Shown: positions 2,551 to 63,130 of the stretch, piece by piece
Layout: each line of letters opens with the position of its first letter
How positions within the stretch are numbered: the stretch's first letter is position 1
Assembly: GCA_964304625.1 (NCBI GenBank)
Contig: OZ199838.1
Location: forward strand, 16,207,731-16,271,730
Source of the DNA: Kudoa neothunni
Taxonomy: Eukaryota; Animalia; Cnidaria
Reading direction: 5' to 3'
DNA length: 64,000 nucleotides
Made by a program: the position numbers and the translations under genes
The notes under the pieces: generated by a model
Databases searched by the model: none
What the model saw: the letters and a program-made list of their open reading frames with translations, nothing else
Told to the model about the DNA's origin: nothing

Positions 2551-3171
2551 ATTATTTATTTAAATTACAAAATATAGATTTTCATTTCGTAAATTATATT
2601 TTTTATTATAAGTGCCATTTTATCATTTTGTTATCGGCATCAAAAATAATTATTTTCAATCTTCCTATCGTATTTTTAAAATACACTCAGTGACCGGGTT
2701 TAAATAATCCCTTAGGAACATGGGAAAATGTATGTGAAATTTGTAACGTCCAATTTTACGCATTTATTAACACCCGCATATAGTAATATAAGTAGCTATT
2801 TAATATAATTGAATATCATACATTTAAAAAAAATAATTAACTGTTTTCTCACCAAAAATTCTTCCAAATATTTGAAATATGACTTTCATCATTGCGATTA
2901 TGATTGAGCGATGTTTTTTGTCAAATATGGATAATTTTTTGACCTCATTTTAATAAATTCACAAATGAAGACAATAATCGATTTGTATTCAATCACTTCA
3001 AAAATTTGATTTGTGTTTTTTAAGGTACCATAGGGGTTCGATATTTAGGATACGTCTGGTGCATTCTATCAACAAATTTGACTGCTTTTGAGGAAATATT
3101 GAAGACGTATTTTATTATTTCATGTTTTGATTTGATTTTTTCTCTTTTAATTTAATTCTTTCGAACATTAA

Positions 3172-5070
3172 CCTTCCGATCGCCTCAAAATCGACTATAC
3201 GCTTAGTACTTAGTACCTTTGGGGTCTATTAGATCCCACTTTTTTTATTTATTATTATGAATTTATGTAATTTTTAAAACTTCATCGCGCAAAAATAAAA
3301 TATTCTATCGACAATATCGCACAATATTGGCAAAAAAACATGCCCGCGAATTTTCCTGATACCACCCGAATAATGTTAAGAGCTTTATATTCTTGTTAAA
3401 TTAATTTTTACGAAATATTATTTCAGAATAACCTTGAAAAATATTCATAATAATGTGTTATAAATTATCTAATATATAATTAGTTAGATTAAATCATTTA
3501 AGGTGCAGCAAAATAGTTATCAACAAAATTGTCTAAAAGGTTTTCAATGTTTAACTTAAACGAATATAGCTATGTAAAATTTAATATTTACTTTCTGTGA
3601 CCTTCCTGATTATTGTAAAAGAGTTTAGGGGTATTTTAATATCATTATTTATACCAGATCTAAAATAAAATCGATGCTCTGACCTTAATTAACAATTTAT
3701 TATGTACGTCAAAACCGAAATCTCATTCCAGAAAAATACGAAAATTATAATGATATCCAGACGTTTATTTGTGTCCAATGAATTGCTAAAACGAGCAGAT
3801 GCGGTAAGTTCTCCACAGCAACGATTCTTATATACAACACATGTATGTATTGTCTTACGATCACAGTTTTTTGTGCTCACAGAAAATATTTTACAGGATT
3901 TTTTGGAACAATATTGGTGCTACTTGGATTCCCTGCTCTTAATTTAGTTCCAAATTTAGCGTCAAGGAACTGCTGAAGGAACGGAATGTGTTAGCGAGAT
4001 TCTCTAAAAATTAGGCTCTTTTGATTTTTCCAACATTGAATATAATTTTGTATAAGCAAAACGCGTTTAAGAGATTTATGTCGATATTATAAAAAATAAC
4101 TCCCGGCCCGCGCCTGGAATATCTTTAAAATCTTGTAGAGAAGAAAATCCGATCAATAGCTCATTTAATTTTGTTATAATAATTGATGCTACCAGGCTTC
4201 TTTTTTTCATCATTCTGTATATTTGTATAAGCTGTTGCTTTGGCTAAAATTAACAAATCCTTATTATTTTAGGGTCTTAAGAAGCCAGATTTTCTTTTCA
4301 TTAAACAGAAAAAGTGTGCTAAATGACTCCTTTGTATTATTTTTTTTATTATATGAGGAACATTCCACTTATTAGCTTTAAGTGTTCTTATCATGGCAAG
4401 AATCATTTTCAAAAGCTTAAAGCTCTTTGCAGAAATGATTATAATATTGAAAATCCAACATAATTAAAAAAGTCCGTAGTATGAGAGGTTCTATGATTTG
4501 CAACATTCGTAAGATAATAGGCCTTATTTAAAAAGATTTATTTTCGTATTTTGAAGGTTTTTAAGACTTCTGTAGAAAAGATAAGGTTATTGTCATCGAT
4601 TTTAGATAAATCAGTGACAGAATCAATAAAATCAGACGAATCGATGATTTCGCCGAAGTCGGAATTAAAATCAGCAGAATATATTTCGCTAAAGGTCTTC
4701 ATGACGACAAATTTCCGTGATATGCGCGGTTCGTACATAGTCGTAAAAACTCGTTGATAAGTAATTCTCATTTTTCTCATTATATCGTCGATAGATTTTG
4801 TTAATATTTTCAATTCCATTTTTTTATAATTTTTTACATAAAATAATAAAATAAAATTGTGGGGTCTATTAAATTCCAAAAATGTCAAGTGTATAATTTT
4901 TATTTTATTTTACATTCATTAATGATACTTCAAAACTTATTTGACAGGAATATAATGTAAGTAATTATACATGAATAGAGCGAATTTTAGAAAATTTGGA
5001 TAGTTGAAAGGAGCAAAAACTAATTTTTAATATGGCTTGGGATTTAATGGGTCCCAAAAGCATTCGAAGG
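3172..5070 (-). mobile_element. Degenerate piggyBac-type DNA transposon
   Basis: TTAA at both ends with imperfect TIRs (CCTTCCGATCGC / CCTTCGAATGC) and subterminal GGGGTCTATTA motifs at 3221 and 4861. Minus-strand remnants KPGSINYNKIK*AID and SRRGPGVIFYNIDINLLNAFCLY resemble piggyBac YNxxKGxVD and RRWPxxxFY..LNA motifs; also an acidic N-terminus and a Cys-rich C-terminal remnant. Confidence 0.75.
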
Positions 5071-7513: not shown

Positions 7514-9590
7514 ATGATGTTCTGGTTAGTGTGTCAGATGTTAATTGCTTATTTTCCATCATTTTTGAATTTTGATGAAGAATCTAAATTAGTTTGAATT
7601 ATTCATAAATTGCATGATCTTTATTATATTTTGTGTAGGAAATTATTCTCTATGTAGATAATGGAGAATTAAGTGTTAATTCATATATCTGCTATCAGCA
7701 CAATCCATCGTATTTTGGTGTTATTTGTGACGACTATTATTCTTATGATTGTTCTGGTAATCAATTATTTTAATTATTTTTTAAATAATTAGTTTAGAGT
7801 TCCTTGACGATGAATATGACAATATAATGGATCTTGAACAAGATTGTTTAACACCATTAGGTGATGAAATCGATCTCACAGATGCAAGTATAACGGTGTT
7901 GGTATCTGACGTAAATCTCAAATCTTCGTAATTAACATTATATATACTTTTCAATAATTGAATAATAATAATAAGTGTGTAATATGAATAAGTTAGAATG
8001 AGGAGCGAACACTACCCTGGTTACGAGAGTATAAAATCGAAAATACGTGAGATTTCAATCGATTATGAACTTATTAACCTACAATACCTAAAACTCACAC
8101 CATCGGAATTAATATTTAATTATTTCGCTGTGATCAACCTAGAAAATATAAATAAAATTAATGTAAAGTTGTTTGTAGCTGAATTTTCTCATTTATATTT
8201 TATTTAAGGAAGAGGAAGGATCCATTGTCTCAAGCGTAAATATATATTTTCCCTTTATAAAATCAAATAATTTTTTTAAATGAAAATTAATTAAATATTA
8301 AAGAGATATATTCAATTAAATTCATATAATTTGATGTATTATACAGTCTAGAAAAGACGATGGATTTATATCCTTCGAGGCGGATGTGGTAATGATAGGT
8401 TATCCTATAGAGAAAAATTCAAGAAACCGTCATGTTAATGTTTATACTGTCAATTTATATGAATATCATTTCTTTTCATTATATTCAACATTTTTTGTTT
8501 ATAAAAATGTTTTACCAATATTGATGTATAAGTATATGACCGTAATTTGATATAATGATAATATTTATCATTTATTTTATTATACTTTAAAGAATAATAA
8601 TGACATTGAAGAAATTACTATCGAATTTCCATGTTCGATAAAAGATGAAATCAAATCAATTACACGTGAACAATACAATGATTGGATATCTATGTTAGGG
8701 GGACAGCAGTATAGTTTTTCCGGGCGAATAAATATTAAAGCCGCGTTCAACTTTGATCAATGTTTCAATTTTATGTGGGAATTGTTGTTCAGATACAATA
8801 GTATCTACCCAAGGAATCTAAAAATAAATGAATTTGTTTCAATCGATTTCCCACCAAAAATTGGTGAAAATACATTTAACGTAATGCATCAAATACTATA
8901 ATACGCGTTTAAAAAAGTTACGATATTAATTATATTATAGGTTGTTATTAATGACGAAACAATTAGTTGGCCTCAAGAACCAACAAGATTTTTTGACTTA
9001 AAAAAAATAATAAACAGAGCTATAAGGAGATTATCATTAAATGTTGACGTAATTTATTATTAAATATTTAGTTTAATATACTTTTCTAGGAAATAGTGCA
9101 ACAGATCTATTATTATTCGACAATTTCATATATTTATGAAAAAGGATTAGAAAATCATAATGAATATTTATTTAGATTTGTTGTATCTGAAGATCTATCG
9201 AATAAAAAATATTTAATTTAATATTTTAGCAAGAAAAAGTGAATTGGGTAACAGGGGCTGTTCATATCCTTGCAAAGAATAAATATGACAATGGTATAAT
9301 GACATTAATTTGAAATCTTTAACTAATGCGAATCAGGCGAAGAGAATGCTTCGAAGTTTCAAAATCATGATAATAATTTGGAACAAAATCCAAAAGACAG
9401 TAACAATGATTACCAAGAGGCACAACATTATAAAGATGAAAATTCTGATCAGTCACAACAAACTAATGGAAAAATATCAAATACGGTTCTGTCGGTGTCG
9501 ATTGTTGTACCAATTGTGGCACTGATAATTGTTATATCTATTCTAACCATCGTCATCAAATATCGACGTCAAAATCGAGGAAACGATTAG
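7514..9590 (+). CDS. Array paralogue 2 (NTPDase-like type I membrane protein, 11 exons)
   Basis: Start MMFWLVCQMLIAYFPSFL. Same intron positions and phases as paralogue 1. Motifs FGVIC, VLVSD, LTPSELIFNYF, IGYP, EFPC, FDQC, FPPKIG, WVTGAV; TM VLSVSIVVPIVALIIVISILTIVI. Confidence 0.85.
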
Positions 9591-12520: not shown

Positions 12521-14507
12521 ATGTTATTCCATTTGATGTATATATGGTTTGTTGGCTATATTTATACGGAAATGAATTTTGACTCGGATCCGAGAACTGT
12601 TAGCTTTATTTTTAAATTTAAAAAATTTTTATATTCTTCAGGAAGTATTGGTTTATATAGAGAGTGATAAGTTCCATGTAAAGTCGTACAGCTGTTTTTT
12701 CAACGAATCCACCTACTTTGGTACCTTTTGTGATTCCACTTATGATTTAGAATGTCCAGGTAGAACATTATATGTTAAATTTTAGTATATAAATTTGTAT
12801 TAGACTATGAGAATTATGAATACGAAAGTGTAACTTACCTTGAAGAAGATTGTATTAAACGCGTAGGAAGAATAGTGGATCTAACAGGTGCAAATGTAAC
12901 CGTGTTGGTCTCTGAAACAAAACTAACATCCTCGTACTCATATTTTTGATATTTTAAATGTGTTTGTAATAAAATGTTACGTAGAATGCGTAGTGATTAT
13001 TATTTAAATTGGGAAATGTACGGTCCAAAAGTTCGGAATATCGTCATGTGGGATGATTTATATATTCCAATATCATACCAAAAACTCTCATCGTCAGAAT
13101 TAATATTTAGTAATTTCGCTATGACTAACTCAATCAATTATCTTAATAGAGATGTATATTATTTCAATATATTTACTATTCTAATATTATTTTAGGAAAT
13201 GGAAAACTCTATCATCCCCAAGGTAAATATAATAATTTGCATATCTAATTCTAAAAGATTATACTTTCATTATAATTTTTATTAACTACAAATTAATATT
13301 TTATTTAATAAAGTCAGCTTTCGACAATGGATATATATCTTTTGAAAAAGATGTGTTCATGATTGGATATCCTACCAACAAAAATTCGAGAAACAACCAT
13401 ATTGATAGATTCACGGTCGGTTCAATTGAATATCATTCGTTTTCGATATATTCAACTCCAATCGTTGACAACATCTTTCCTAAATTAGTCTACAGTTTCG
13501 TAAAGGTAATCCGAAAAAATATTTTATATAAATTATTAAATATCTAGCTTCAGTCTTTTAAAGGTAACAAACCTATGGATGAAATTACCGTAGAATTTCC
13601 ATGCTCCATGATAAATGAAGTAATTACAATCATGTCCGAAGAATATAGAGAATGGATATCTAAATCCGAGGGAAGCAACGATATTTTCTTGGGACCAATT
13701 AATTTTGAATCCGCATACGATTTTGACAAATGTTTGAACTTCATAATAAATGTCTTGTTAGTTCCTAATGTTGATCATCCCTGGAATTCAATAAATAATG
13801 AATTTATTGCAATTCAATTCCCGCCTAAAACCGGAACAATAATTTTTGATGTATATTATTTTTTTAATTAAAAAATATTAATTAATTTCACTTAGACTTT
13901 TATAAATACTGAGATCATTGATTGGCCTTCAATACCTACAGATTTGTCGACCCTACATACATTAATAAACAATGCGATTGTTGAATCCTCAATGGGAACT
14001 AAGGTAATAAATTTTCATTAATTTAAGTTTAAGGCCATTTTAGGAAGTTGTGGATTTAATGTATAAGTATGCGTTAATTTCTCATGTATGTGAGAAAGGT
14101 TTAAATAATCAACAAGAATACCTATTTAGGTTTTATGTATTTGAAAATTAACTAAACATATAAATTACAATTGAATATTTTAGTCTGATCATTTGCCATG
14201 GGAAGTGGGATTTGTCAATATTCTAGCAAAGTCAAAGTTTGATAAAGGTAGAATACATTACTTTTTTTAAAAATTGATTTTATTAGAAATTGAAGCTAAA
14301 CAATTAATTAAAAATAAAAAAGATATGCGTGAAGCATCGCATAAAGGTAATGTTGAGAGTCCCGAATCTTCCCAAATGAGAGAATCGAATAATTCAAGCT
14401 TGACTTTGCTGGTCTCTATTCTTATATCCGTCATGATATTAATAATTGGAATCGCAATCATTACGTTCTATAAACTTCAACTCAGAAAAAATACAAAGGA
14501 TATATAA
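12521..14507 (+). CDS. Array paralogue 3 (NTPDase-like type I membrane protein, 11 exons)
   Basis: Start MLFHLMYIWFVGYIY. Motifs FGTFC, LSSSELIFSNFAMTNSINYL, GYISFEKDVFMIGYP, EFPC, FDKC, HPW, FPPKTG, WEVGF; TM LLVSILISVMILIIGIAIITFY. Confidence 0.85.
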
Positions 14508-21732: not shown

Positions 21733-23756
21733 ATGTCTGATATATGGATTTTTCTTGTCCTCTTTGTGTATGATTCCTCAATCTTATGTTTCGTTTTGAA
21801 AGAAAAGCTAGTATATATCGTTTGGATTTATTAATATATGTGTTATATTATGTAGGAGATCGTGCTTTTTGTAAATGATTCGAAATATCGAGGCACCGCG
21901 TACCTATGTATTGATTATGAGCCATTAGACTTTGGAGTGTATTGTGATAATATATTTGAAGTTGTTTGCACTAGTAGGAACGCATCTCAAAAAATATATT
22001 TTATTTAATTTTATAAAGATGATTACACCGATCAATTTAATGATTCGGCTGACCTTGAAAAGCAGTGCCTAAGACGCATAAGTCAGTATGTGAAAATGAC
22101 AGAAGGCAGTGTAACCGTTCTAATTGCTGATGATAATATAATCCCATCGTAATAAACTTATTTTTTAATTTAATTATAATATATAATAGAATGAAAATCA
22201 GTTATTACAACAAATGGAATAATTATGGTACTGAAATTCGGGATATTACGTTAAGTAATACACTTCTACCAATCTCATACGTAAAAATCACATCATCAAA
22301 TCTAATATTTTGTTATTTCGCCATGGCAAACGAGGTGAGTACTATTATTTTAAAATTAAATATTATTGATATGTATTTGTAATGATAAAACTTTTTATTC
22401 TAGGAAGATGTCTTGTTTATTAAAAAGGTAATTTATTTATAAATATTTTTTTAAATAGTTATAAACTAATTTTTTTAATAATAATAATAATGATAATAAA
22501 TGGTACTTTGAGGTATTTAATAATCTAAGATCTAGCCAAAATACGACTTCGGATTTGTATTTTTGGATGCGGACGTATTTATGCTTGGATACCCCACGGC
22601 GACCAATTTCAATAATATAAACATAAATACATTTACACTTAATTCGAATGAACATAAGTTTTTTTCGATATATTCAATGCTCATGGGTCATAAGAATATC
22701 CTTCCTAAATTGGTTTATAAATATATAATTGTAAATTACTTGTTTTCTTTTTTTTATTGTGTTACTTTGTGATATATTTAGCTTAAAAAGTATCATGTCG
22801 AGAAACTCAGCGGTGAAATTACCATGGAATTCCCTTGTTCAAAAAATGATGAAACAATTACGATTACTTCTAAAGAATTCAGAATATGGGTAACCGGGTT
22901 GGACGGTGATAGTAGAAAATTTTTAGGACCCATAAAAATGGTGGCTGCATATGATTTATTAATTTGCTTTAATTTATTGAGGGAAGTTACGTTAATTTCT
23001 AATAGTACCCATCCATGGAATTTGGAAACTGAAAAATCTCTCTCCATTGAATTTCCACAAAAATATGGAAGCAATTACTTCGAAGTTGATCTCATAATAA
23101 AATTTTAATTCTAAAAATAAATTATATTTCTTCAGATATACTCGAATTCCGGTAAATTTAGTTGGGTCACAAAATCTATTGCATTTTCGGAGTTGCAATC
23201 TTTATTAAACGCTGAAATACAAAAATCTTCCTTTAATGTGAATGTAATTTTGTTAAAAATTATTAAGCCTTAATCTATTAATAGGAAGTTGTCGAACAAA
23301 TATATTATTATTTACTTATTTCCTATATTAATGACAAAGGTCTAGAAAATCATGTTAAATACACATTCATATTTTTGGTATTCGCAAACAATTCTAAAAT
23401 ATATATATTTATTTATTTAAGGATAATTATCTACACTGGGAAGAATGTTTTGTAAAGAATACTACAAAAATCAAATTCAATAATGGTATATTTTTTTATA
23501 TAATCATTATTAATAATATCATTTAGATAGGAAAAAATATTTAAAATCACGAGATAAAGATGACGCTAATAAAGGTCAAAATAAGCCACTTAATGAAATT
23601 AATGATAATTCACCTGAATCCAAAGAAAATAACCAATCTAAAATTTCCAACAAAATCCTGGTAGTTTCAATTATTGTTCCTACCTTGGCAGTAACAATAG
23701 GTATCACCGTTTCATTATATTTCACCTACGGACGCTCCAAATTTGAAAGATTATGA
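21733..23756 (+). CDS. Array paralogue 4 (NTPDase-like type I membrane protein, 11 exons)
   Basis: Start MSDIWIFLVLFVY. Motifs FGVYC, VLIADD, LGYP, EFPC, HPW, FPQKYG; TM ILVVSIIVPTLAVTIGITVSLYF; stop TGA ending 23756. The exon 4 donor appears shifted (see findings). Confidence 0.82.
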
Positions 23757-29394: not shown

Positions 29395-31781
29395 ATGTCA
29401 CTTATACTGGTTTATTCAATGATTATTGCGTTATATCGAATAATGGTGGATACGCAAACAAACAATAAAAGGGTAGCTTACGTTTGTTGGTTGGTAATAC
29501 GTTTTATTTATCTAGTAATTTATAGGATGTCCTATTGTATCTGGAGAATGAAAAATTCCACATAAATTCGTATAATTGTTATTTAAATGATTCAACATAT
29601 TTTGGGGTGCGTTGTGATAGGTTAAAATCAACATATTGTGTTGGTAATATATTTAATTGAAATATTATCATTTGACGTTCACCAAAGATTTCAATAACAA
29701 TGATTATGTGAACGCTTTTGATCTTGAAAATCAATGTTTAAAAGATTTCTTTAATACGATCGATCCCACAGACGGTCGCGTAACCGTACTTGTAGCTGAT
29801 GAAACAGTAACATCTTCGTAATCTATCATATCGAATTAGTATTTTAATTCATTATTAAATTTTATAGAATGCAAAGTCACTATTATACGAACTGGAAATA
29901 TTTTGGGTTCGGGATTCGCTACATTATCGTAAACGATGTACGTCTTCCTGTGTCTTATTATAAGATCGCCAACCTGAATATAATGTTTTGTTATTTCATC
30001 GTGGAGAACGAAATAGATCACATTACTCTGGATGTATATCAATAAAATTGAAAAAAATAAAATTCATTATAATTTTAGGGAAAGAATGAATATGAAATTA
30101 AACAAGTAATTGAATTAATTGATAATTATCAACTTTATAAAAATGCGAAATGATAATATTAAGTTGTTTTGCAAATATATCATCAAATAAAAATATTTAT
30201 ATATAAAAGACGGCCTACCAATTTGGTTACGTTTACTTGGATCCAGAGGTGTTTATGCTTGGATATCCCACAAATACACAGTCGACAAATACGAATATAT
30301 ACAAATACACCCTTAACTCGATTGATCATCAATTTTTTTCAATATATTTAAAATCAATGGGATATAAAAACATCTTGCCAAAATTAGTCTATAAAAATAT
30401 ATTGGTAACTTTATAATAATTTTTATTGAAAATTAATATTTTTTAATATTTTTAGCTTGATAGATATAAGGAAGTACGACCCGGGGGTGAAATTCACATG
30501 GAATTTCCATGTGCTACTTCTGACGAAACAATAACACTTACTTCAGTTGAATTCCAAGAATGGATATCCACATTAGATGAAGATAAAAAAAAGTTTTTGG
30601 GGCCCATAAAATTACTGGCTAAGTACGATTTTACAAACTGTTTAAGCTTAATGGGAGACGTGCTATATTCGAATGTTTCCCATCCTTGGAATTCGGAAGC
30701 ACAATACTTTTTATCCTTCGAATTTCCTCCGAAAAGTGGAATAAAATCATTAGACGTATATATTTAACAATTTTACCATAAATTTAACTTAATGTTAATT
30801 GAAGGTGATTGCGAGCGATGAGGAAATCAATTGGCCCACCAAACCGGTCACGTTACTTGCATTACGACATGCATTAATCATATCAATGATAGAGAATTCG
30901 TTTAACGTTAATGTAGTTTTTTATGAAATTAAGCATGGAATATTTACTTTTAGGAGCTCTTAGAACGGTTTTATTATTTTTTCATTATTTCATATATTAA
31001 TAATAATGTTAATGGAAAAAAGGAGGGATACACATTCAGATTTATTGTATATGATATTTCAATATAATGTAAATATAGTTTAACATTTTAGAGTAAAACG
31101 ACTCCATGGCAGAAATGCATGCTCCAAAACATCACCAAATATAACATTAATAGTAATATTTTTATAAATTTTGTGGATAAAGTTAATTTATGTATAGGGG
31201 ATGATCCAATAAATGGTGCTAGTGTTAATATTGACGATTACCCTCTGATCGATAGTGATATTACAGAGGATTCGACTCGAACTCTTACTGATAAAACAGA
31301 GAGCTCGTCTCAAGACAACGGTGATACGTTATTGAATCCTACGCACACCAGTAGTAACGATAATGTTGGTGAAGCCTCTCAGACGGATAATGAAAATCTG
31401 GACGGTTATTTGCAAACCGAGAGTGCTACTTTCGAGGATTCTACTCATATTCATAATGAAAAAATAGAAGAATCCTCTCAAAATGATAATGATAATATAG
31501 ATAACGGTATACAAAACGGCAATGAAAATAATAATGAAGCTTCCTCTCAAAATGATAATGATAATATCGATAACGGTATACAGAACGGTAATGAATACAA
31601 TAATGACGCTTCCTCACAAAATAATACTGAGCATACTACTATAAAAATTGTGGAAAAATATAACAAAACAATCTTGGTGGTTTCGATTGTCGTTCCACTA
31701 ATGATTTTGATAATCGTCATTGCAATTATTATTTTATTTTTCAAATTTCGAACAAAAACGTACGACGAATACTATATATGA
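29395..31781 (+). CDS. Array paralogue 5 (NTPDase-like type I membrane protein with extended N/D/E/S-rich stalk)
   Basis: Start MSLILVYSMIIALY. Motifs FGVRC, VLVADE, LGYP, EFPC, FTNC, HPW, FPPKSG; long last exon with 69-bp repeats; TM ILVVSIVVPLMILIIVIAIIILFF; tail KTYDEYYI. Confidence 0.85.
31467..31625 (+). repeat. Coding tandem repeat, 2.3 x 69 bp (EESSQNDNDNIDNGIQNGNENNN) in the paralogue 5 stalk
   Basis: Units start at 31467, 31536 and 31605. Confidence 0.9.
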
Positions 31782-38103: not shown

Positions 38104-40136
38104 ATGCCGCTCTTATTGGTTTTATCACTTTTTGTATCATACTTGGCAACGATAATGAATCTCCAATCGAATAATACATTAGTAACTCCCATAACAAACT
38201 ATTAATATTTCTATAAATTAATACATAGGAGCTATTTCTTCATATTGAGGATAAGAATTTCAAAGCTGAATTATACCTATGTTACCTTAAGGGGTCTAAT
38301 TATTTTGGTGTGAATTGTGATAATTTAAAATCAGCAAATTGTGCAGGTAAAAACAGTGGACTCAATATTTTTTAATTTTTCTTCCAAAGAGTTTAATAAA
38401 AATGATTATGAAAACGCCCATAATCTTGAAAATCATTGTTTAAGAAATCTAAGTGTTGATGTCGATCTCACAGACGTTGAAGTAACTGTACTGGTGGCTG
38501 ATGAGGAGTTCGATTCTGCGTAAATAATCACTGTAATTATACATTTTTATTATAATTGATATTATATAGGTTTCAAAGTGAATATTACTTAAATTGGAAA
38601 AATTTCGGTTCAAGAATTCGTGAAGTCAGCCTCAATGATATTACACTACCGATATCATATTATAATCTCACCAATTCGAAGATAATATTTGGTTATTTTG
38701 CCCTAAGAAACGAAATGAATTATTTTACATGGAAAGTAATCTACACGATTATCACCATGTTATACAATATTATAATTTTTTTAGGAAAGTGAAGAATCAT
38801 ATGATTATGATAGTGAAGTAATTGAAATATTTAACATTAATGTTGAAATAAAAATTTAAAAACTTATAATGCCTTTATGCATAAAAGATTTAAATATCAT
38901 TAAATTTTTTATTTTATACACAGCGACCAAACTTTGATGTTGGATTCGTATCTTTGGATTCGAAGAAGTTTATGCTTGGATATCCAACAGAATCTACTTC
39001 GAAAAATATACACATAAATAAATATACTATTAATTCTACTGAACACAAATTATTTACAATATTTTCCAATTCAATAAGTTTCGAAAATATTCTTCCCAAA
39101 TTAATCTACCGATATATAATAGTAGATTAATATTTATTTATTAATTCTGTGTAATTTTACATTGTTCAGCTAGGAAAATATGAAGATAAACAATCTGACG
39201 GTGAAATTGAAATAAAATTTCCTTGTGCACGATCAAATGAAAGAATAACTATTCAATCTGATGAATTCAAAGTATGGATATCCAAATTAGATGGGGATAA
39301 CAGAAAATTTTTAAAACCTATTAATTTGGTGGCTGACTTTCAATTATCGTATTGTATATTTTTCATGGGAGATGTACTATTGAGATCAAATGTTGATAAT
39401 CCATGGAATTCTGATACAGAGGACTTTTTCTCGATCCAATTTCCTCCAAAAAATGGAACCAAATCGTTTGATGTATTAATATAATCTTGATATTAAAATC
39501 TATGTTAACACAAGATTTGGGATAATAATGAAAAAAGTTTTTGGCCAAAAACCCCAGTCACATTATTAGGTTTGCGTCATGCTTTAGTTAGGGCACTAAC
39601 AAAGGAATCCTTCAAACTTAACGTAATACATCGGATAATTGTTTATTATTTACTTTCTTGTAGGAACTTCTCGAGCGGATATATTATTTTACCTTTATTT
39701 CATATATTAATGATAAGGTTTCAGACAATAAAGAAGAATACACTTTCAGATTTTTTGTATTATTTACAAATTCTAAATTGACCAATATTATTTTGATCAT
39801 TTTAGACTGATGATTTAGCATGGGAGGAATTTTTTGTCAAAAACATCACCATGATTAAACTCGATAAAAGTATGGTTTTTTGATATAAGTATATTATAAA
39901 AAATTATAGAAGCTAATTCCGACAATAGGAACACTACAAATTCTATTTTTGATAAATTTGGTTTACTAAAAAATCCAAATCAGGGGGATTCCGATTCATC
40001 CTCCGATAGTGACTCCAAAAAAAAGAAGATAATTTTGGTTGTGTCTATTGTTATTCTAATATTGATAGCAACAGTTTGCGTTGTTATATTTTTAATTTAC
40101 AAATATCAATATTCGGTATATGAAAGTACATTATAG
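38104..40136 (+). CDS. Array paralogue 6 (NTPDase-like type I membrane protein, 11 exons)
   Basis: Start MPLLLVLSLFVSYLATIM. Motifs FGVNC, VLVADE, LGYP, KFPC, NPW, FPPKNG; TM IILVVSIVILILIATVCVVIFLIY; tail YQYSVYESTL. Confidence 0.85.
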
Positions 40137-40313
40137 TTGAGTTTGACCGACAACAAATTTCGAAGCACATTTATAACCTGAATGATTATAATTTTTCATG
40201 TTACACAAATTAGATGTTTTTCATTTTTATATTGCTTTAAATTTTTGTAAGCACTATAAAAATTTTTTCTTCTAAATTATGTTAACGCAAAAAAAGCTAC
40301 ACAAAAACGACTA

Positions 40314-41280
40314 CACTGCAACGAACTTGGGGTCATTTTTCCTTTGGAACCCAGTTTTCCAATTTACTATAGTTAATAAAAAAATATTTCAAGGCGCACA
40401 ACAAATTTTAGGCAATTTCTACTGACTAAATTTTGAGAAAAAGATGATTCATTTAGCCAGTTAATCCTACGAAATATTATTCGGTAGGCTTATATAACGT
40501 TTCGTAAATTTTCGTTTAAATATATCAACAATTTTTCATTCTATAGAGAAAGAAATAAACATAAAAGAATCAAAAAATATTTGAGTGTCAAAGCCAATAG
40601 ATTTTTATTTTGAACACTAAGTATACTTACTCGAATAATTAAATCAGCCAATATATTCTCATAATTAATGCATCGAATGTTTATTATTTATTATTTAGAC
40701 GACTAAAAATTTTCAAAATACTTTCTTAAGGTTATATTCCATTATTTCGATTTCTTAGGAACGATATGAATTGGGTTTTTTAGTTACATTATGATCCATT
40801 GATTGTTAACTAGTTATGGCTAATAGAAACATATTAACTATTATACTGTTTAATTCTAAACATGCTATATTGATTAAAAGCCTAAGAATTTGCATTCTAA
40901 ACATGTAACATCTATCGCGCTTGATTTTATCGTTCAACGAGTTTATACGAAGTGTTATATTAGTTTGTCGAAATGACTTCGGGAGGATTAGTTGGCTCAA
41001 TGAATCATCTTTTTCTCAAAATTTAGCCGGTAGAAATTTCTTAAACTTTGTATAGTATTTTAAAATATTTTTTTATTACCTATCGCGAAATAAAAACCTG
41101 GGGTCCAAAAGACCCCATGTTCATTGGAGTGTAGTTTATTATTTCAATGTTTAATAAGTTCTAAATATCGTAACTTAATGAAAATAACATAACTATCAAA
41201 TTTTTTAAAGGTATAAATAACATATAATAATAAATTTAAAACTACTTTGGGGTCCAAAAGATCCCAAGTTCGTTAGAGGA
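40314..41280. mobile_element. Non-autonomous piggyBac-like element (uninterrupted copy of the 54.7-56.6 kb element)
   Basis: Right end CCCAAGTTCGTTAGAGGA|TTAA; degenerate left end CAACGAACTTGGGGTC; GGGGTCCAAAAGACCCC palindrome; long homology to 54745-55199 plus 56395-56623. Confidence 0.8.
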
Positions 41281-43676
41281 TTAAAAGGAATTTTACAATT
41301 ATAAATTAATTTCTTATTTAACTCGTATATAATCTTCAGGTAGAATAAAAATTTCTCATTAATTCAAATCATTAGTCTGTATCATTCTAAAATCCACTAA
41401 TTGAAGAAATCAATTCACCGAATAACATCAATCCTTTTATGGAGAATTATAATTTTTTCAATTTAGAGATGTAAAAATTTGTACGGTTGTAATCAATAAT
41501 ATAAATATTAAACAATTGTAAATATATCTTATTTTTATATTAATTTTCATATGTTTATTTTTATATTTCTATTGTTAATAATAAAATTTATTATTATTAC
41601 AATTCGAGGGATTTTTAAGTATTATAATTGACAATATAGTTCATAATGTAGTGATATTAGTGGATAAAAGTTTCACTCAACTAAATTCATTAATTTTCTA
41701 GCAAGTTTTCTCCGATTTGATTTATTTACCCAAAATAGAAATTCCGAAACAAATATTTCTAAGCTAAATATTATATTTATTTACGCTTCAGTGTTTTAAC
41801 AAGTTTAACACTTTCGTGTCTTTTGCTTACTTTATAAAAAATACGAAAACATTGATCGCTCTGTTTTTATTTTTTTGAAAAAAATAAAAAAATTTTAAAG
41901 TAATTTTAATAATAATATAATTATGAAAAATTATAATAGACGAAAAGTAAAAGTTTTCTATAATATTGATTCACAACGATTAAAATTATAATAGTTTTTT
42001 GTTAACAAATATTTTTAAGTAATTTATAAATATTCATATATATATTATGAAAATAGAAAAATTCATTTAAAAAGTTATTAAGCTATTTCTAAGGTGCTTT
42101 GGTTAGTAAATCATTATTTTCATCATTTACAATTATATAATACGTATACTTGGTTGGAAAAAATTTATATACTAAATTTCAACCTATTTTACCTATACTT
42201 AAAAAATTTTGCTTCAATTATTTTTAGATTTTGCAGAGTTTCAAAAATGAGACATTGGCATTCATATATGCGCATGCGTGAGAAATTTGATTGATGAGAA
42301 CATTTTGATTATATTAGGCAAATTTTTAAAAATCAGACTTAAAATAATTTTTTAATGCATTTGAAGGAAGGATGAAATTTACACATGTTTGCGATGAGTA
42401 CGAATAGTTTTTTTATTGACTCCTGTAGTTTAATGATAACAGTTTTTAGACTGTCGGAGGGATTCTATTAAGATAAATTTATGATCTTTAATTATCGCTC
42501 ATTAGAATCCCCAAGGTGGTAGTTAATTATGTGTTGATATAAATAAATTATTATTATCACCAATTAGTTTTTTCGCTGTATTTAATCGTAATGTTATGAA
42601 TATTAGTTGCAACAAATTTAGCAATAATTTATATAAATTTCACTGAACTCTTAAACTTATTAAAATTTTAAATGTTATGATTTTCAATTATTTTGTAATG
42701 TATTACTTTCTGACCCAAAAAAATTGGGGGATATTGAGAAGTTAAATTTTTTATGGTTGAAAATAAAGTCACGCATTTTTAATTATATATGGTTCGAATG
42801 GTATATTGTTATTTAGAAATTTCAAAAAAAATTATCTTAATTTTTATTAATATTACCTAATTTAAGTTAATATAGATTAAAAAGCCGAGTATAATTGTAT
42901 ATTTTACTTAGCATTAAAGTTTATTACTAAATTTAATTAATCAGAAATATTAATTTTAATATATTTATTGAGATAATCTAGGCACGATTTATATGTTATA
43001 TCTAATTACACCATTAATTCGAATAATTAAATTTGTATTTTAGTAATATTTGTTTTCGAGCATTAAATTATTTTAAAATATTTTATAAAAATGTTCAAGT
43101 TGAAAAATCACTTTTAATTTACCTCTTAAATTAGTGATAATACGATTAATGTGACAATTATATCGATATACGTGTCATGTAGGTGTAATTAAATATGTTC
43201 TTAGGATTATGTAGCCATTAACCAAACTTCTTACGTGGCCAATCTCAATCTTTACTGCGCATTAATAAAATTTATATATGTAAATTACAATTTATTAAAA
43301 AAAATGATTTATTTTTTTAATTTAAAATTATTATTTAAAATACAAATTTGTAAATATTTCCTGTAAAAATCCTTCGAAGTGAATTAACGACAAATGAATA
43401 AATATTTAAACATTTTATAATTTCACGATTAAAAAAAACATTAAAATGTATTAAAAACAATTATTTCTCGTTAAATTAACGGAAAACACATTAATAGCTG
43501 TAAAAGAGAGTAGTGAGTGCAAGAATTATTATTCATTTCACAAGTATTATAGACAAAATATAGTTATTGAGTGAACATTTATTATTCTTTTACATATTTG
43601 TTATAGAAATTTGAAGTAATAATCGATATAATTTACCAAAAATTAGAATTAAAATAAATAAAAATTTATTCAAGAC

Positions 43677-45881
43677 ATGTTATTTTTGATTTACTCAATT
43701 ATAATTGGATCTTTGAACTATATATTGAGCAAAGAGTTGAAAACGCCTACAGTAAAATAATTTATTTCTCAATTTTTTTTTATTTTTTTATAGGAATTAC
43801 TGGTTTATTTCAACAACGACAACTTAATATTCAAGCCATATTTGTGTAATCAAGAAGAAACAAAAATATTTGGAGTGCATTGTGAAGAGGAGACAGAATA
43901 TATTTGTTACGGTATAAGAATTATTAAATCACGGATTACTATATAAATAATTAAGATTTTTCAAGCAGAGGAAATTCAAGAATAATTAACGAAAATAAAT
44001 GCTTCCTAGAATTTATTGAAGAACGATCGCCGAATATAACTAATGTTACCTTCGCATCAGTTGATAACTTATTAGAATTAAAGTGATGAGTTTGTGTTTT
44101 TTGTGTATAAAATTCAAATTATTGCATTAAGAATACAGAATGGATATTATGATTTGACGCAAGAACAAATAAATGACCGCCATGTAAACATTTCGGGGTT
44201 GCCACTGCAAATACATTATTCCGTTTTGGAAACATCTGAAAAAATATTTTTTAATTATTTAAAATCTAATGAAAAATTTTCAAGATTTAAAACGGTAACT
44301 TAGTGAATTCTAACATATATCTTACCTCAACAATTTCCTTTACCTTTAGAAAGACGGTACGATGGTAACTTTAAGGGTAATTAAAAAGATAATTATATAT
44401 TCTTTAATATTCAAATTTCGGTAAATAAATAAATTTTACATAGATGAATAAGAAAAATGGATATATTTCTATTGATGAATATGCCACTTTGATTGGATAT
44501 TCGACTGATTATGACCCTCAAAACGATGATATTACCATGTTTAGGGTAAAATCACAGGATTATCCATTCTTTTCAAAATACATAAAATTGGGTTATAAGG
44601 ATATTGTTCCAATTCTAATATACAAAAACATAATGGTAACCGAAAATTATTTATTCCATAAATATAAAAAATATTATTCATTAGAGTGGAGATTTATAAA
44701 ACATATGTTGATAAACCATATCAAATTTTATGGATTCACCTTGCTCCCTTATTAACACAACCATAAATATTGATTATAATGAGAAACATAATAGTTGGAT
44801 AACGAATAAGAAAGTTATTAATGAATTGTTTTTTGAGCCAATAAATATCGTTTCCAAATATGATTTTGTGAAATGTCTGGATATAATCAAGGATTGTGTA
44901 TTGGTATCAAATGAAGAAAATCCTTGGAATGATCAAACGAAGAATTTGATTCAAAGGGCGTTTCCAATGAAAAATGGTGGAAATTATATTGATGTAAATT
45001 AATAATCGATCAAATCCTTTCATTTATTAAAATATTATGATTGATTGATTAATTAGTTAATTATAGATGTATAACTTCAAGTCAAAATCCCAAAATGACT
45101 TTTTACACTAGCTCAATTTCATCATTACAAGAACTAGTAAATGTTTCAAATCATTATAAAAATAGTGGCGAGCATGTATCTTCATTGACATTAAATGAGG
45201 CCACTGAATACTTCTACGAAACGGCTGCTAGGATGTATTACTTGGCCATTCTCAACTTTTTTTCTTCTGGAGAACATATTCACAACAAAAATTACGTCTA
45301 TAAGTTTAATGTATTTTAATTATTAATAATTATATTTATTGTTATTTCAGAAGCTCAACCCAAATTGGCAGACTGAATTTATTAGTTATCACACAATGTT
45401 GAGATTATTTGAAGGTAAATATGTTTATTTGTTATTAAATATAAAAATTTTATAAGGAGCGGAAAAAATCAGAAAATCTATGGATAATGATCATGAAAAT
45501 GGCGTAAAAATAAATACTAACGCATGTGGCCTAATAAATAACATTTAGTTTGGAACTGATGAATCGTCTACTCCTAATGATGTAAGTATTGGAGACCAAC
45601 AAAAAGCTGATGGAAAACCGGATTCTCATAAAAATAATGAGGACTCACCACCAAATTCTGGAAATGACAACGAACAAATAAAAAATGATGAAGAGGATAA
45701 GGATTTTTCTGAAGAAAATACTTCAAAGTTGACAACCAAATCACCCAACCAAAGATATAAATCAAAGTCTTCGTTAGTGGCCGCGATTGTTATCCCACTT
45801 GCGATAATTTTGATTTTATTAATTATTGGAGTATTTGCTTTTACGAGGAACAAAAAGGCTGGTAACCTCCGCTTCAACTAA
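43677..45881 (+). CDS. Array paralogue 7 (subfamily B); frameshifted in this sequence, either a pseudogene or assembly errors
   Basis: Start MLFLIYSIIIGSLNYIL. Motifs FGVHC, GYISIDEY, YPFFSK, DSPC, FVKC, NPW, FPMKNG; TM LVAAIVIPLAIILILLIIGVFAF. Frame breaks at ~44690-44730 and ~45090-45104, both in or near homopolymers. Confidence 0.75.
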
Positions 45882-50995: not shown

Positions 50996-53936
50996 ATGAT
51001 GTTGAAATTTTTGTTTTGTTCAATTTTTATTGGGTATTTTCTAAATATTCTAAATGAAGAATTTAAAGACCAACGAGTAAGGTATATATAAAACAATTGA
51101 CGAAATAATTTGTTGAAGAACTTGTTGGTTTATCTCAACCACAGCCAATTTGTTGTTAAATATTATTCGTGCGATACAGTAAAATCAAAAATTTTTGGTA
51201 TAGAATGTACTGAAAAGAATAAATATACTTGTTCAGGTATAAGATTTTCCCTATCTGCAAAATATATTAATATATAAATAGATTTAAAAAATAAAATTAT
51301 TAATTCAAGGATTGAAATTGAAGACGAATGTCTCATTGAGTTTTTTAATGAATATCAACTTCCACCAACTTACATTATTTTTGCTGTACCCGTGGAAACA
51401 TTAGGCTCAACGTAATTTGATAGAAATTAAAATATATTGATTATTAATTTATTAAGATCAAATGATGCACATGCTATTTGGTCCGAAGACATCGAAGATC
51501 GTATGTTATCATATACTGGCAAAAACTATCCAATACATTATTCAAAAATGACATCATCAGAAAAAATATTCTATAAATATTTAAAATCAAATGGAAAATC
51601 ATCCCAAGCTGAATCAGTAAAATAGATTTATTTATTCATAATAATTATATTCTAGCTGGATGGATTAAAGTATAATGAATGGGTATATTATTATATTCAT
51701 TTCTTCTGACATATAATAACGCACAGTTATTTTATCATTTAAATTAATTACAAATATAATTTTCACCTATAAATTAATGTAAGCTAAGATAAAAATATTT
51801 TAGACATATGAGGACAGTGGTTATATCTCTATTGATGAAGATGAAATTTCGATTGGATATTTGTCAGAAATCGATCCCCAAAATCCAGATATTATTACTT
51901 ATAGAGCCAAAAAGGAGGATTATCCATTCTTTTCAAAATATATAACAGATCTTGGGTATAACGATATAGTAGCAATTCTGATATATTATTTAATAAATGT
52001 AATCAAACGGAATATTGGTTCGCAATATGTGACCTATTTTTGTTAGGAAGGAGAATATAATATTACCCCGAGTAATGTCGTCGTTATCGAATTTCCTTGC
52101 TCAGTAACAAATGCAACGCTCAGTATTGCTGACGTAAAATATATTAATCAGCAATTCCAAAGTTTAATCACTAAAGAATTATTTTTTGGAACATTAAATA
52201 TTATTGCAAAATATAATTTTCCTCGTTGTGTAAAAATTATTACTGATGCATTGTTTACCCCAAATGAAGACCATCCATGGAACGAAAAAACAAAAAAATT
52301 AATTCAGACTGGATTTCCTAAAAAAGTCGGCACAAAAACCTTCAATGTATTTAATTAATTATGCAATTACCTGAAGAAAATCGAATAAATAATTTATATG
52401 TTCTTTAATTTTAGCTATATAATTTCAAGGCGAAATCAACAACTAAAGATGGCTTTCATTCATTGCAATCCATACGAATAATAACTAATATTTCTAAAAA
52501 ATATCAAACGAGAGACGAACATATATTGTCTTTCCAACCTGATGAAACCAATAATCATTTTTTTGAGGTGGTTGAACGGATGTATTATTACGCTCTAATT
52601 TACATTATTTCTACTGAAATATCAATGGATGGGTATGGATACGCCTATAAGATTCACGTTTATAATATTTTCTTAATAACATGTTATATCATTTTATTAA
52701 AGGAAAATAATATTGAATGGGATTCTGAATTTGTTAGTTATATCACTATGATGAGATTTTTTGAAGGTACAAATATTTTTCTATTTTATAAATTATGATA
52801 AAAATTTATAAGACGCCGAAGAACTCTTGAAACCAACCAAAAATGATGAAGAACAAACACATATCGTCGATATAGATCAAAATAGTGAGACAGCAGATAA
52901 TATTAATGATTCCAATGAATCTACTCAAGAAGTTGATGAATCCAGTGAATCTACTCAAGAAGTTAGCGAATCCAATGAGTCTACTCAAGAAGTTGATGAA
53001 TCCGGTGAATCTACTCAAGAAGTTAGCGAATCCAATGAGTCTACTCAAGAAGTTGATGAATCCAGTGAATCTACTCAAGAAGTTAGCGAATCCAATGAGT
53101 CTACTCAAGAAGTTGATGAATCCAGTGAATCTACTCAAGAAGTTGATGAATCCAGTGAATCTACTCAAGAAGTTAGCGAATCCAATGAGTCTACTCAAGA
53201 AGTTGATGAATCCAGTGAATCTACTCAAGAAGTTAGCGAATCCAATGAGTCTACTCAAGAAGTTGATGAATCCAGTGAATCTACTCAAGAAGTTAGCGAA
53301 TCCAATGAGTCTACTCAAGAAGTTGATGAATCCAGTGAATCTACTCAAGAAGTTAGCGAATCCAATGAGTCTACTCAAGAAGTTGATGAATCCAGTGAAT
53401 CTACTCAAGAAGTTAGCGAATCCAATGAGTCTACTCAAGAAGTTGATGAATCCGGTGAATCTACTCAAGAAGTTAGCGAATCCAATGAGTCTACTCAAGA
53501 AGTTGATGAATCCAGTGAATCTACTCAAGAAGTTAGCGAATCCAATGAGTCTACTCAAGAAGTTGATGAATCCAGTGAATCTACTCAAGAAGTTGATAAA
53601 TCCAGTGAGGTTCCCCAAAAATCAAACGATTCCATCGAGCCTAATCATAACGATGATGATTTGAAGGATGCTCTTCCAGTGGATGGAGGTGAAAGTAACC
53701 CCCCTCAAAACAATGAGGAAACCGAGAGTGAAATACAACCGGATGAGAGCAATGAAGAAACATCGGATGATAGTAGCTCCGTAGCCACAACCATAAGCGC
53801 TAGAGAAAAATCGAATATAAATTCTACAATAGTGACGCTAATTGTTGTTCCCATCTTGGTATTAATAGTTTTGGTTTCAATTGGAATATATATCAAAATG
53901 AAAAAGAAGAAATCGAATAATACTGACATAGTCTGA
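50996..53936 (+). CDS. Array paralogue 8 (subfamily B, 10 exons) with ~230-aa E/S-rich tandem-repeat stalk
   Basis: Start MMLKFLFCSIFIGYFLNIL. Motifs FGIEC, GYISIDED, YPFFSK, EFPC, FPRC, HPW, FPKKVG; last exon corresponds to ORF 52827-53936; TM IVTLIVVPILVLIVLVSIGIYI. Confidence 0.87.
52908..53609 (+). repeat. Coding tandem repeat, ~23 x 30 bp (ESTQEVDESS / ESTQEVSESN) arranged as a 60-bp dimer
   Basis: Near-identical units ctactcaagaagttgatgaatccagtgaat and ctactcaagaagttagcgaatccaatgagt alternate. Confidence 0.97.
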
Positions 53937-61149: not shown

Positions 61150-63130
61150 ATGTTGAGTATTTTCATTTATTCCATTTTCATTGGCTATTTCCATAATGTC
61201 ATAAATGAAAACGCTTTAAAATCGACCGTAAAATGTATTATATACAAAAAAAATAATTTATATTTAAAGGAAATATTGGGTTACCTCAACTACAGTAATT
61301 TCATCCTTAAACGTTTTTCTTGTTATTCAGAGGATGCCATAAGTTTTGGCGTCAAATGTTCCGAACAACAAGAATACATCTGCTCAGGTATGAAATCTTA
61401 AAATATTTTTTAATTTTAATTTATAATCAATAAGATTTCACTGATATAAGTTCAAACTCAAGAGTATTACTCGAAAACATGTGCCTTATAGATTATTTCG
61501 ATCATAATATAATGTCAGAAGCTACCGTTACTTTCTTATTACCCGATAAAACATTAGAATCAAGGTATTATGCTAACTATTGATAACGAGTAGTTTCAAC
61601 TCTTTTTGGACACAGTTTGCAATGGGGATATGACTTTTGGTACGATAATGTAGTAGAGCGTAGCATAACAACCGAAAAAAATAATTTTCCAATTTATTAT
61701 TCGAAAATGTCCTCATCAGGAAAAATATTCTATCAATATTTGGAATCCAATATAAATCAGTTCGGCGATCCAGTAACTATTCCGCTATGTTAGCAACAAT
61801 TATTTTTCATTTAAATATATTCTAGTTACTAGGATCATCCGGTAAAAATATGGTAATTTAATATTTCATATAATTTGTTCACTCCAAATCCACATATTTA
61901 TTTAAAAGAGATTATAAAATTAAACATGAAACGAAATTTACATTCAGCTGTATTATAATTTTTTAGATAAATGATGATCATGGTTATATCGCTATTGACA
62001 AAGATGGAATTTCTGTCGGTTATATGACCGAAGGTAATCCTTACAATCCAAAAATAAGCACATACAACGACATAAATCATACTTATTCCTTCTACTCAAA
62101 AATTGTACACGGTTTTCAAGAAGATGAAATCATCCCAATTCTAATATTTTATTTGATAGATGTGATTGAAAAATATTTTTGTAACGTAATATAGTGCTGG
62201 TTTTATAGATCGGAAAATATGCCACCAATAAGAATGGTGATGCTTATATCGCTTTTCCTTGTTCTACAGTAAGTGCAAATCTAAGGCTTTCAGATAGTAA
62301 ATACATCTATCGGCATTTCCAAAGGGAAACTAAAACAACAAAATTTTTTGAATCAATTAAAATTGTCTCCGCTTATAATTTCGATGAATGTGTGAAATTA
62401 ATGAAGGATTCATTGTTGAAAAAAGGTGGTAAGTCATATCCGTGGAGTGCAATAACCGACCAAATGCTTAAAACTGATTTTCCACCAAAAAAGGGAAGCA
62501 GACAATTCGATGTAAAAATCCCTTTGATATTATCCAAATAGTTTATTTATATCTTGGTTAATTGTAGATATACAACTATAAACACAGTTTTGAAATTGAT
62601 AATTACTACCGCCCCTTGGAATCCATTAGATCTTTAACCTCTATATTCAACAGGGAGCCAACTTATGTCAAACCCTTATCGTCGATTTCACCAGATGAAG
62701 CCATTCAAATTCTGAATTACGTGGTTAAAAGGACGTTTGCCTATGTTATCGCCGCCTTCTTTTCTGAATCAGAGTCAATATATGGCAATGATTACGTCTT
62801 TAAGACTCATGTATACAGACAACTTTATAGGAAATACTTAATAATTTTTATTATAGGAAAATAAAATTGGTTGGCAATCACAATTTATTAGTAATCAAAC
62901 CAGTATACGATACTATTTCCATAGTAGATATAATTTCTCCTTAATGCATTGTTAAAAATCTGATAGACCGTAATAAAAACTTCGGCCCCCAAAGCGATAA
63001 TTTGGGAGAAAAAAAAGGATCAGATATAAGGGAAAATAGGGGCTACACAGATTTCATTGAAGATTTCCAAAGGTCTTCACAAGATAGGAAACAGAGATTG
63101 AGATACAGTGACAAAATAACAGACGAATAA
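61150..63130 (+). CDS. Array paralogue 9 (subfamily B, 10 exons), lacking the C-terminal TM; predicted secreted
   Basis: Start MLSIFIYSIFIGYFH (alternative in-frame ATG at 61123). Motifs FGVKC, GYIAIDKD, AFPC, FDEC, YPW, FPPKKG. The last exon from 62967 is hydrophilic and ends ...RLRYSDKITDE* at 63130. Confidence 0.8.

Follow-up and report, generated by a model that had tools for sequence, protein, structure and literature searches.

In a family of multi-exon surface-protein genes of Kudoa neothunni, a myxozoan parasite of fish, a minimal intron appears to have been turned into coding sequence. At one exon junction some paralogues carry an intron of about 41 nt and others carry 14 in-frame codons, and a comparison of genes from this one species suggests that an intron of about 42 nt ceased to be spliced in one lineage, became 14 codons and then gained a conserved motif. 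We put the probability of this reading, de-intronization, at roughly 0.65. It is the best reading because the intron is found at the junction in all resolvable outgroups, and because the genes with the extra codons (hereafter, long genes) form a clade nested among intron-bearing genes.

The window (the whole 64,000-nt stretch of DNA that was analysed) is AT-rich, with a GC content of 0.22–0.33, and its + strand holds nine paralogues, P1–P9, of one multi-exon gene. In P1–P6, an open exon of 36 codons is followed by a phase-0 intron, which either contains stops in frame or throws the frame off; the exon after it starts with a conserved E/D-[VIL]-[VL]-x-x-h-Y-Y-Y helix. In P7–P9, a segment of 42 nt is in frame and stop-free. 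This difference between P1–P6 and P7–P9 had been pointed out in a preliminary description of the DNA, and its coordinates and peptides were confirmed from the sequence. The features are listed below as read from the sequence, and for P7 also from a short-read contig of DNA run X1.

2044 to 2084, + strand: P1 intron, phase 0, 41 nt, GTAAAT..TAG
9049 to 9089, + strand: P2 intron, phase 0, 41 nt, GTAATT..TAG
14004 to 14043, + strand: P3 intron, phase 0, 40 nt, GTAATA..TAG
23244 to 23284, + strand: P4 intron, phase 0, 41 nt, GTAATT..TAG
30913 to 30953, + strand: P5 intron, phase 0, 41 nt, GTAGTT..TAG
39623 to 39663, + strand: P6 intron, phase 0, 41 nt, GTAATA..TAG
45067 to 45310, + strand: P7 exon E7, 36 + 14 + 31 codons plus one extra T (T5 run)
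45100 to 45104, + strand: the T5 run of P7, frameshifting the exon upstream of the segment by one base; T4 in the X1 contig
45176 to 45217, + strand: P7 segment, 14 in-frame codons VSSLTLNEATEYFY, starting GTATCT and ending TAC, edges GT..AC
50996 to 53933, + strand: P8 whole gene, with signal peptide, degenerate NTPDase-like exons E2–E8, acidic repeat, transmembrane (TM) helix and short tail
52415 to 52657, + strand: P8 exon E7, 36 + 14 + 31 = 81 codons, one open frame from acceptor to donor
52523 to 52564, + strand: P8 segment, 14 in-frame codons ILSFQPDETNNHFF, edges AT..TT
62568 to 62810, + strand: P9 exon E7, 36 + 14 + 31 = 81 codons
62676 to 62717, + strand: P9 segment, 14 in-frame codons LSSISPDEAIQILN, edges TT..AT

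Because the segments of P7–P9 are bounded by GT..AC, AT..TT and TT..AT, GT-AG splicing cannot take place at their edges; the P7 segment is one base short of a GTA...TAG intron. P8 is open from the signal peptide through to the transmembrane tail. Between its NTPDase-like part and the transmembrane helix lie 23 copies of a 30-nt repeat (52906–53608) encoding ESTQEV(D/S)ES(S/N), an acidic stalk typical for a surface protein, and P5 has a shorter repeat at 31453–31630.

A search of the genome with the largest exon, E6, returned 31 copies, and a search with an E6 profile returned 34 members of the family, here called family A. Most are arranged in tandem on contig 1 around the window, and the rest are dispersed. 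All loci were fetched and the junction was inspected in each of the 34 genes. The 42-nt coding form is present in 13 genes (P7–P9, L001–L008, L011 and L013), and 20 genes have a GT..AG intron of 39–53 nt at the junction between exon parts E7a and E7b; the upstream exon has frame problems in three of the latter (L014, L019 and L021). The remaining gene, L026, is ambiguous, with 48 nt at the junction (GTGGTA..CAAAG) that are GT..AG-bounded and also open in frame. Thus, with a 13/20 split across the family, the pattern is not a chance of the nine genes in the window. Among individual loci, the twins L005 (C1:16290236-16294514) and L006 (C1:16277966-16282244) are near-identical over the columns used for the tree below (282 columns), but two of their 14 segment residues are different (D to A, S to P). 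In L015 (C1:16202263-16206538), exons E5, E6 and E7b are spaced 1.4–1.8 kb apart, where family introns are usually about 40–57 nt; this wide spacing probably reflects insertions into two introns, or a decaying gene.

In every one of the 13 long genes the segment is exactly 42 nt long, contains no stop and has no GT..AG pair at its edges. It encodes the motif xSSLxP[D/N]EAxxYhY, of which S2, L4, P6, E8, A9 and Y12 are each conserved in 8–10 of the 13 genes. Mean pairwise identity among the long genes is higher in the segment (0.30) than in the 12 residues before it (0.20), and GC content is 0.26–0.48 in the segments vs. 0.12–0.30 in the introns. To judge from these sequences, the segment is coding now and is kept by conservation at the protein level; its S-P-D-E-A run looks like a helix N-cap that may lengthen the helix that follows. 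RNA runs X4–X6, the only RNA runs labelled with the species, placed 0–1 reads on positions 39480–45470 of the window, and a search of 1.84 billion proteins with the E6 profile found no transcript-derived protein of the family. As a possible relative in other species, that search returned one 82-aa fragment, P0001, which was set aside as its contigs end 111 nt past the exon, short of the junction.

The intron and the segment occupy the same junction. On the acceptor side, the same codon boundary is used in every gene, and the next codon opens the E/D-[VIL]-[VL]..hYYY helix. On the donor side, the distance from a conserved Y-x-S-L-E anchor is 20–22 residues to the donor in most intron forms and 21 residues to the segment start in long forms, an agreement within one codon. 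Among intron forms, exon E7a mostly has 33–36 codons (L017 has 39), against 35–36 in long forms and 34–35 in a related subfamily, B, which is introduced below; the segment length of 42 nt falls inside the range of introns at this site (39–53 nt). The preliminary description had proposed that the intron and the 14 codons are the same DNA in two states, a proposal that would fail if the 14-residue indel lay away from the intron position. The anchor spacing puts both at one junction, and the acceptor and donor positions, the length and the edge codons together support the view that the ~41-nt intron and the 14 codons are one stretch of DNA in two states.

Two other ways of matching the forms were considered and ruled out. 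In the first, the end of the upstream exon of P2–P6, S[FL]N[VL]N, is matched with the similar S[FL]xP[DN]E of the long form, so that the intron would fall within the 14 residues and the indel elsewhere; the anchor-to-junction spacing (20–22 vs. 21 residues) excludes this alignment. In the second, the 42-nt intron of L018, which reads VS(stop)LAP..., was taken as DNA-level homology to the coding motif. L018 groups with L009 well within the intron-bearing genes, and the V-S of its reading derives from the donor consensus GTATCA. Beyond the edge codons, no nucleotide similarity is left between introns and coding segments.

The number of events was approached with a maximum-likelihood tree of 282 columns, made from HMM-aligned blocks of exons E2–E6 together with E7b and with the segment excluded. 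In this tree the long genes are one side of a branch with 100/100 support, which becomes 96/100 when three divergent members are added and is 100/100 with outgroups. Because the long form is a single clade, one change is enough to account for it. When the family alone (31 genes) is rooted by MAD or minimum variance, the root falls on the stem that separates the two forms or within the intron-bearing side, and the best root is never inside the long clade; clock-type rooting of the family alone leaves the direction of change equivocal.

The junction was also read in genes outside family A. Subfamily B (L024, L030–L033, L037 and L038) scores at most 19 bits against HMMs of either form, and both forms score about 77–125 bits against the family profile. 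In 7 of 7 resolvable genes of this subfamily, a phase-0 intron of 43–56 nt stands at the junction, after a 34–35-codon E7a starting L-Y or L-F and with its donor in the same position as in the intron forms of family A; in the exon that follows, the second conserved cysteine (C2) is reached after seven residues. In a more distant group (L034, L036 and L039–L042), in-frame stops occur 4–10 codons upstream of the C2 helix and acceptor-like AGs 5–8 codons upstream of it, and the divergent family-A members L025 and L027 have an intron at the junction. The cysteine pair C1/C2 is kept in subfamily B, in L026 and in the canonical Kudoa NTPDase. Its presence in subfamily B and L026 and its absence from both family-A forms support a root outside both forms. 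Taking subfamily B as the outgroup groups it with L026 (98/98) and leaves the long clade nested within intron-bearing genes; this placement depends on 90 aligned columns for subfamily B and involves long branches (L026, L016 and L021), so that long-branch attraction is possible. By parsimony, the intron is probably ancestral and the long clade derived. The opposite direction, intron gain, which the preliminary description preferred, is therefore probably wrong, given intron-bearing outgroups and a long clade nested within. The gene tree that it recommended for mapping intron presence gave this nesting when rooted on subfamily B. The canonical NTPDase, which it had proposed as the root, was treated as uninformative, since the nearby intron of that gene is in phase 2, not clearly the intron seen here, and the exon structure is different.

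Other features of these relatives came to light. L039–L042 have a helix, (E/K)CFxxxIIY, near the canonical CFKSAYILIV, and subfamily B has three cysteines in an E6-like exon. Besides family A, two or more subfamilies of NTPDase-like surface genes are present in the genome.

The strongest of the competing explanations, itself unlikely, is that the 14 codons are ancestral and were made into an intron in the other lineage (intronization), for example when a TAY-to-TAG nonsense mutation 42 nt past a GTA codon was rescued by splicing. A single base separates the coding form of P7 from a consensus intron (GTATCT...TAC, then G), intronization is commoner than de-intronization in published surveys (PMC2740785), and the MAD or minimum-variance root on the stem between the forms (31 genes) would permit this direction. 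The best argument for it, as read from the sequences, is the spacing of the cysteine positions. The C1 and C2 positions are separated by about 25–26 residues in the long form, as against 27 in the canonical NTPDase; subfamily B has 15 and the intron form about 11. The preliminary description was correct that the long form is nearer the canonical spacing, as seen here in the genome's own enzyme, and the intron forms, which are 10–15 residues shorter, are as short as an intronized ancestral loop would predict. We rank this match below the outgroup evidence and regard it as a coincidence or a reversion. Every resolvable outgroup has an intron at the junction, so an ancestral coding state would need independent origins of this intron in subfamily B, the distant group and L026; otherwise, these very divergent genes, which retain the cysteines, would have to fall within the intron subgroup, with two losses of the C1/C2 pair. 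Moreover, no rooting method has its best root inside the long clade.

De-intronization can be described as a short series of steps. The ancestor would have had a phase-0 intron of about 42 nt between an E7a of 34–36 codons and an E7b starting E-V-V-x-R-h-Y-Y-Y. Splicing would have been lost in the ancestor of the 13-gene clade that includes P7–P9, most likely when the terminal TAG changed to TAY, which would have killed the acceptor and, in the same step, removed the only stop that a phase-0 intron divisible by three must hold in frame; the donor GTA would later have decayed to ATA, TTA and other codons. Being divisible by three and otherwise stop-free, the intron would have been read through as 14 extra residues, which were retained and then came under purifying selection. 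We infer the order of these mutations, and likewise the presence of the 42 nt in the mature mRNA.

The edges of the segment fit such a history. The segment's first codon is ATA, GTA, ATC or TTA in most genes of the long clade, and its final codon is TAC or TAT in those that branch early. Parsimony reconstructs the ancestral edges as RTA...TAY, followed by GAA, which is 1–2 changes from GTA...TAG followed by G; for arbitrary codons, the chance of such near-splice edges is about 0.004. Introns that could be read through exist among the paralogues now. The 39-nt intron of L010 and the 48-nt intron of L024 (about 2996–3043) are open except for the terminal TAG, the 48 nt of L026 (about 2409–2456) are fully open, and the 45-nt intron between E7 and E8 of P8 (52658–52702) is fully open in frame. 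Open introns divisible by three could be retained without breaking the protein. According to a study of minimal myxozoan introns (PMC13644364), splice signals in this group are reduced to GTa...AG, and signals so reduced would make the switch cheap in both directions.

A history with two switches is also unlikely. Here the intron would first have arisen by intronization in the middle of the inter-cysteine loop, and the long clade would later have returned it to coding sequence, restoring the canonical loop length. The loop figures accommodate this sequence of events (27 residues in the canonical enzyme, 15 residues plus an intron of about 45 nt in subfamily B, and 25–26 residues in the long clade), and so do the intermediate states in the family: L010 and L024, open but for TAG; L026, open with GT..AG; and P7, coding and one base from an intron. 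On a wider view, where splice signals are no more than GTA...AG, the ~41-nt introns and 13–16-codon segments of Kudoa would be freely interconvertible.

Two unrelated events are likewise improbable. In one version, the long clade would have lost the intron precisely and then received an independent insertion of 42 nt. In the other, loop and intron would both have been present in the ancestor; the intron would then have disappeared from the long clade, and the loop from the remaining genes as their donor moved upstream. When introns are lost in other lineages, precise loss is the most frequent kind (PMC4443532), and the canonical NTPDase does have a coding loop and then an intron two codons before C2. 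However, no donor shift is visible, as subfamily B and the intron forms of the family share one donor position, and unrelated events would require several coincidences: a length within 39–53 nt, the exact junction, and edge codons one step from GTA and TAG.

The P7 exon upstream of the segment is frameshifted in the assembly, a defect that does not appear in the preliminary description. In the short-read contig of run X1 the run at 45100–45104 is T4, which gives back the 36-codon exon; further differences between this contig and the window occur at 44337 (6 nt missing), 44693 and 44725. L002, a minus-strand locus, is shifted by +1 in a T run at the corresponding point at the start of exon E7, and L019, compared with L012, likewise has a +1 frameshift in a homopolymer run at the start of exon E7. 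Long-read assemblies err at sites such as T runs. The homopolymer frameshifts of P7, L002 and L019 are probably assembly errors rather than marks of pseudogenes. The weakest explanation, that the two forms do not differ at the mRNA level, because the 42 nt of P7–P9 are removed via other splice sites or alternatively spliced or because the long genes are pseudogenes, draws on the GTATCT start of P7, the in-frame AG 57 nt downstream and the frameshifts of P7 and L002, and is very improbable in view of the absence of a GT..AG pair at the edges in all 13 long genes (0/13), the conserved peptide motif and coding-like GC across a deep divergence, the missing P7 frameshift in the short-read contig, the location of the L002 shift in a T run and the fully open frame of P8.

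For the identity of the family, searches and folding used single exons, and exon blocks were joined only for the trees. Exon-by-exon Pfam scans of the seven P8 exons and of 28 E6 exons gave no match to GDA1_CD39, and PF01150 searched against the genome matched only the canonical gene on contig C2; L023 is the canonical NTPDase locus of this genome, and a run of N at about 3460–3700 of it lies past the gene's stop codon as we read the gene. The E6 profile found no NTPDase among 1.84 billion proteins or among PDB sequences, and exon-wise hhalign comparisons with plant apyrases gave nothing significant (P-values 0.015–0.26). An AlphaFold2 model of exon E6 alone (mean pLDDT 77) had rat NTPDase1 (3zx0, 3zx2 and 3zx3) as all nine of its best Foldseek matches, which are weak (E-values 0.5–1.9, TM-score 0.45), and a VIA-align comparison of the model gave Z 3.2 over 57 residues. 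The family motifs come in the same order as in CD39. In the E2 alignment, hLhYhxxxxhxhxxYxC is found where the canonical Kudoa enzyme has IIDAGSTGSRLYMY, and the phosphate-binding DxGSS of ACR1 is absent; thus, the family proteins are unlikely to be enzymes.

In sum, the family resembles the GDA1/CD39 NTPDases (PF01150) in its motif order, in the weak Foldseek matches of E6 and in its surface anchor, a TM helix. It differs from them in lacking any Pfam, HMMER or profile-profile match and the DxGSS motif, and in having a C-terminal stalk of acidic or Ser/Thr-rich repeats. The NTPDase identity given in the preliminary description is weakly supported, by motif order and a weak fold match, and finds no counterpart in the exon-wise Pfam, HMMER or profile-profile searches. 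'Pseudo-NTPDase' is a reasonable label for these putative relatives of the NTPDases.

De-intronization has been defined as a loss of splicing that turns a whole intron into exon, with a signature of extra sequence that is divisible by three, has no in-frame stop and has lost its splice boundaries (Roy 2009, PMC2740785). No case was found among 28,256 Cryptococcus introns, from which strong selection against such insertions was inferred (PMC2740785), and a few cases have been reported in Schizosaccharomyces (PMC3629103). In Kudoa, similarly, a whole short intron corresponds to coding sequence that is in frame, stop-free and divisible by three, with the splice boundaries absent. This holds in 13 of 13 long genes; the extra exonic sequence lies exactly at the intron position of the homologues, and the intron appears ancestral from subfamily B (7/7), the distant group, L025, L027 and probably L026, with few columns and long branches behind this polarity. 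Unlike the published cases, the Kudoa event is old, lies between paralogues rather than orthologues, is fixed in a 13-gene clade and added residues that now form a conserved motif; it is known here from genome sequence.

The case also bears comparison with intronization of exonic sequence (Irimia et al. 2008; Catania and Lynch 2008, PMC2586383; Roy 2009), with which it shares two states at one site and a small mutational distance between them, P7 being one base from an intron. The polarity indicated by the outgroups is reversed, although the nonsense-rescue route is still a viable rival. The Kudoa introns are like the minimal myxozoan introns described elsewhere (PMC13644364), with GTA donors that have a weak T at position 6, acceptors of TAG, AAG or CAG, and lengths of 39–53 nt; the sections of that paper drawn on here cover intron length and splice signals and make no mention of conversion between intron and exon.

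On sequence comparison, the junction is probably a new instance of a process that is known but seldom observed, here in an animal whose introns are minimal and with the new residues recruited later. De-intronization has clear published criteria and very few accepted examples. In the Kudoa family, sister genes keep the intron, and other paralogues are one mutation away in either direction. If confirmed by RNA, the family would be a natural system for the traffic of sequence between intron and exon where introns are about 40 nt long and splice signals minimal, and it would show that protein segments can be added and removed in this way in a rapidly diversifying family of parasite surface proteins.
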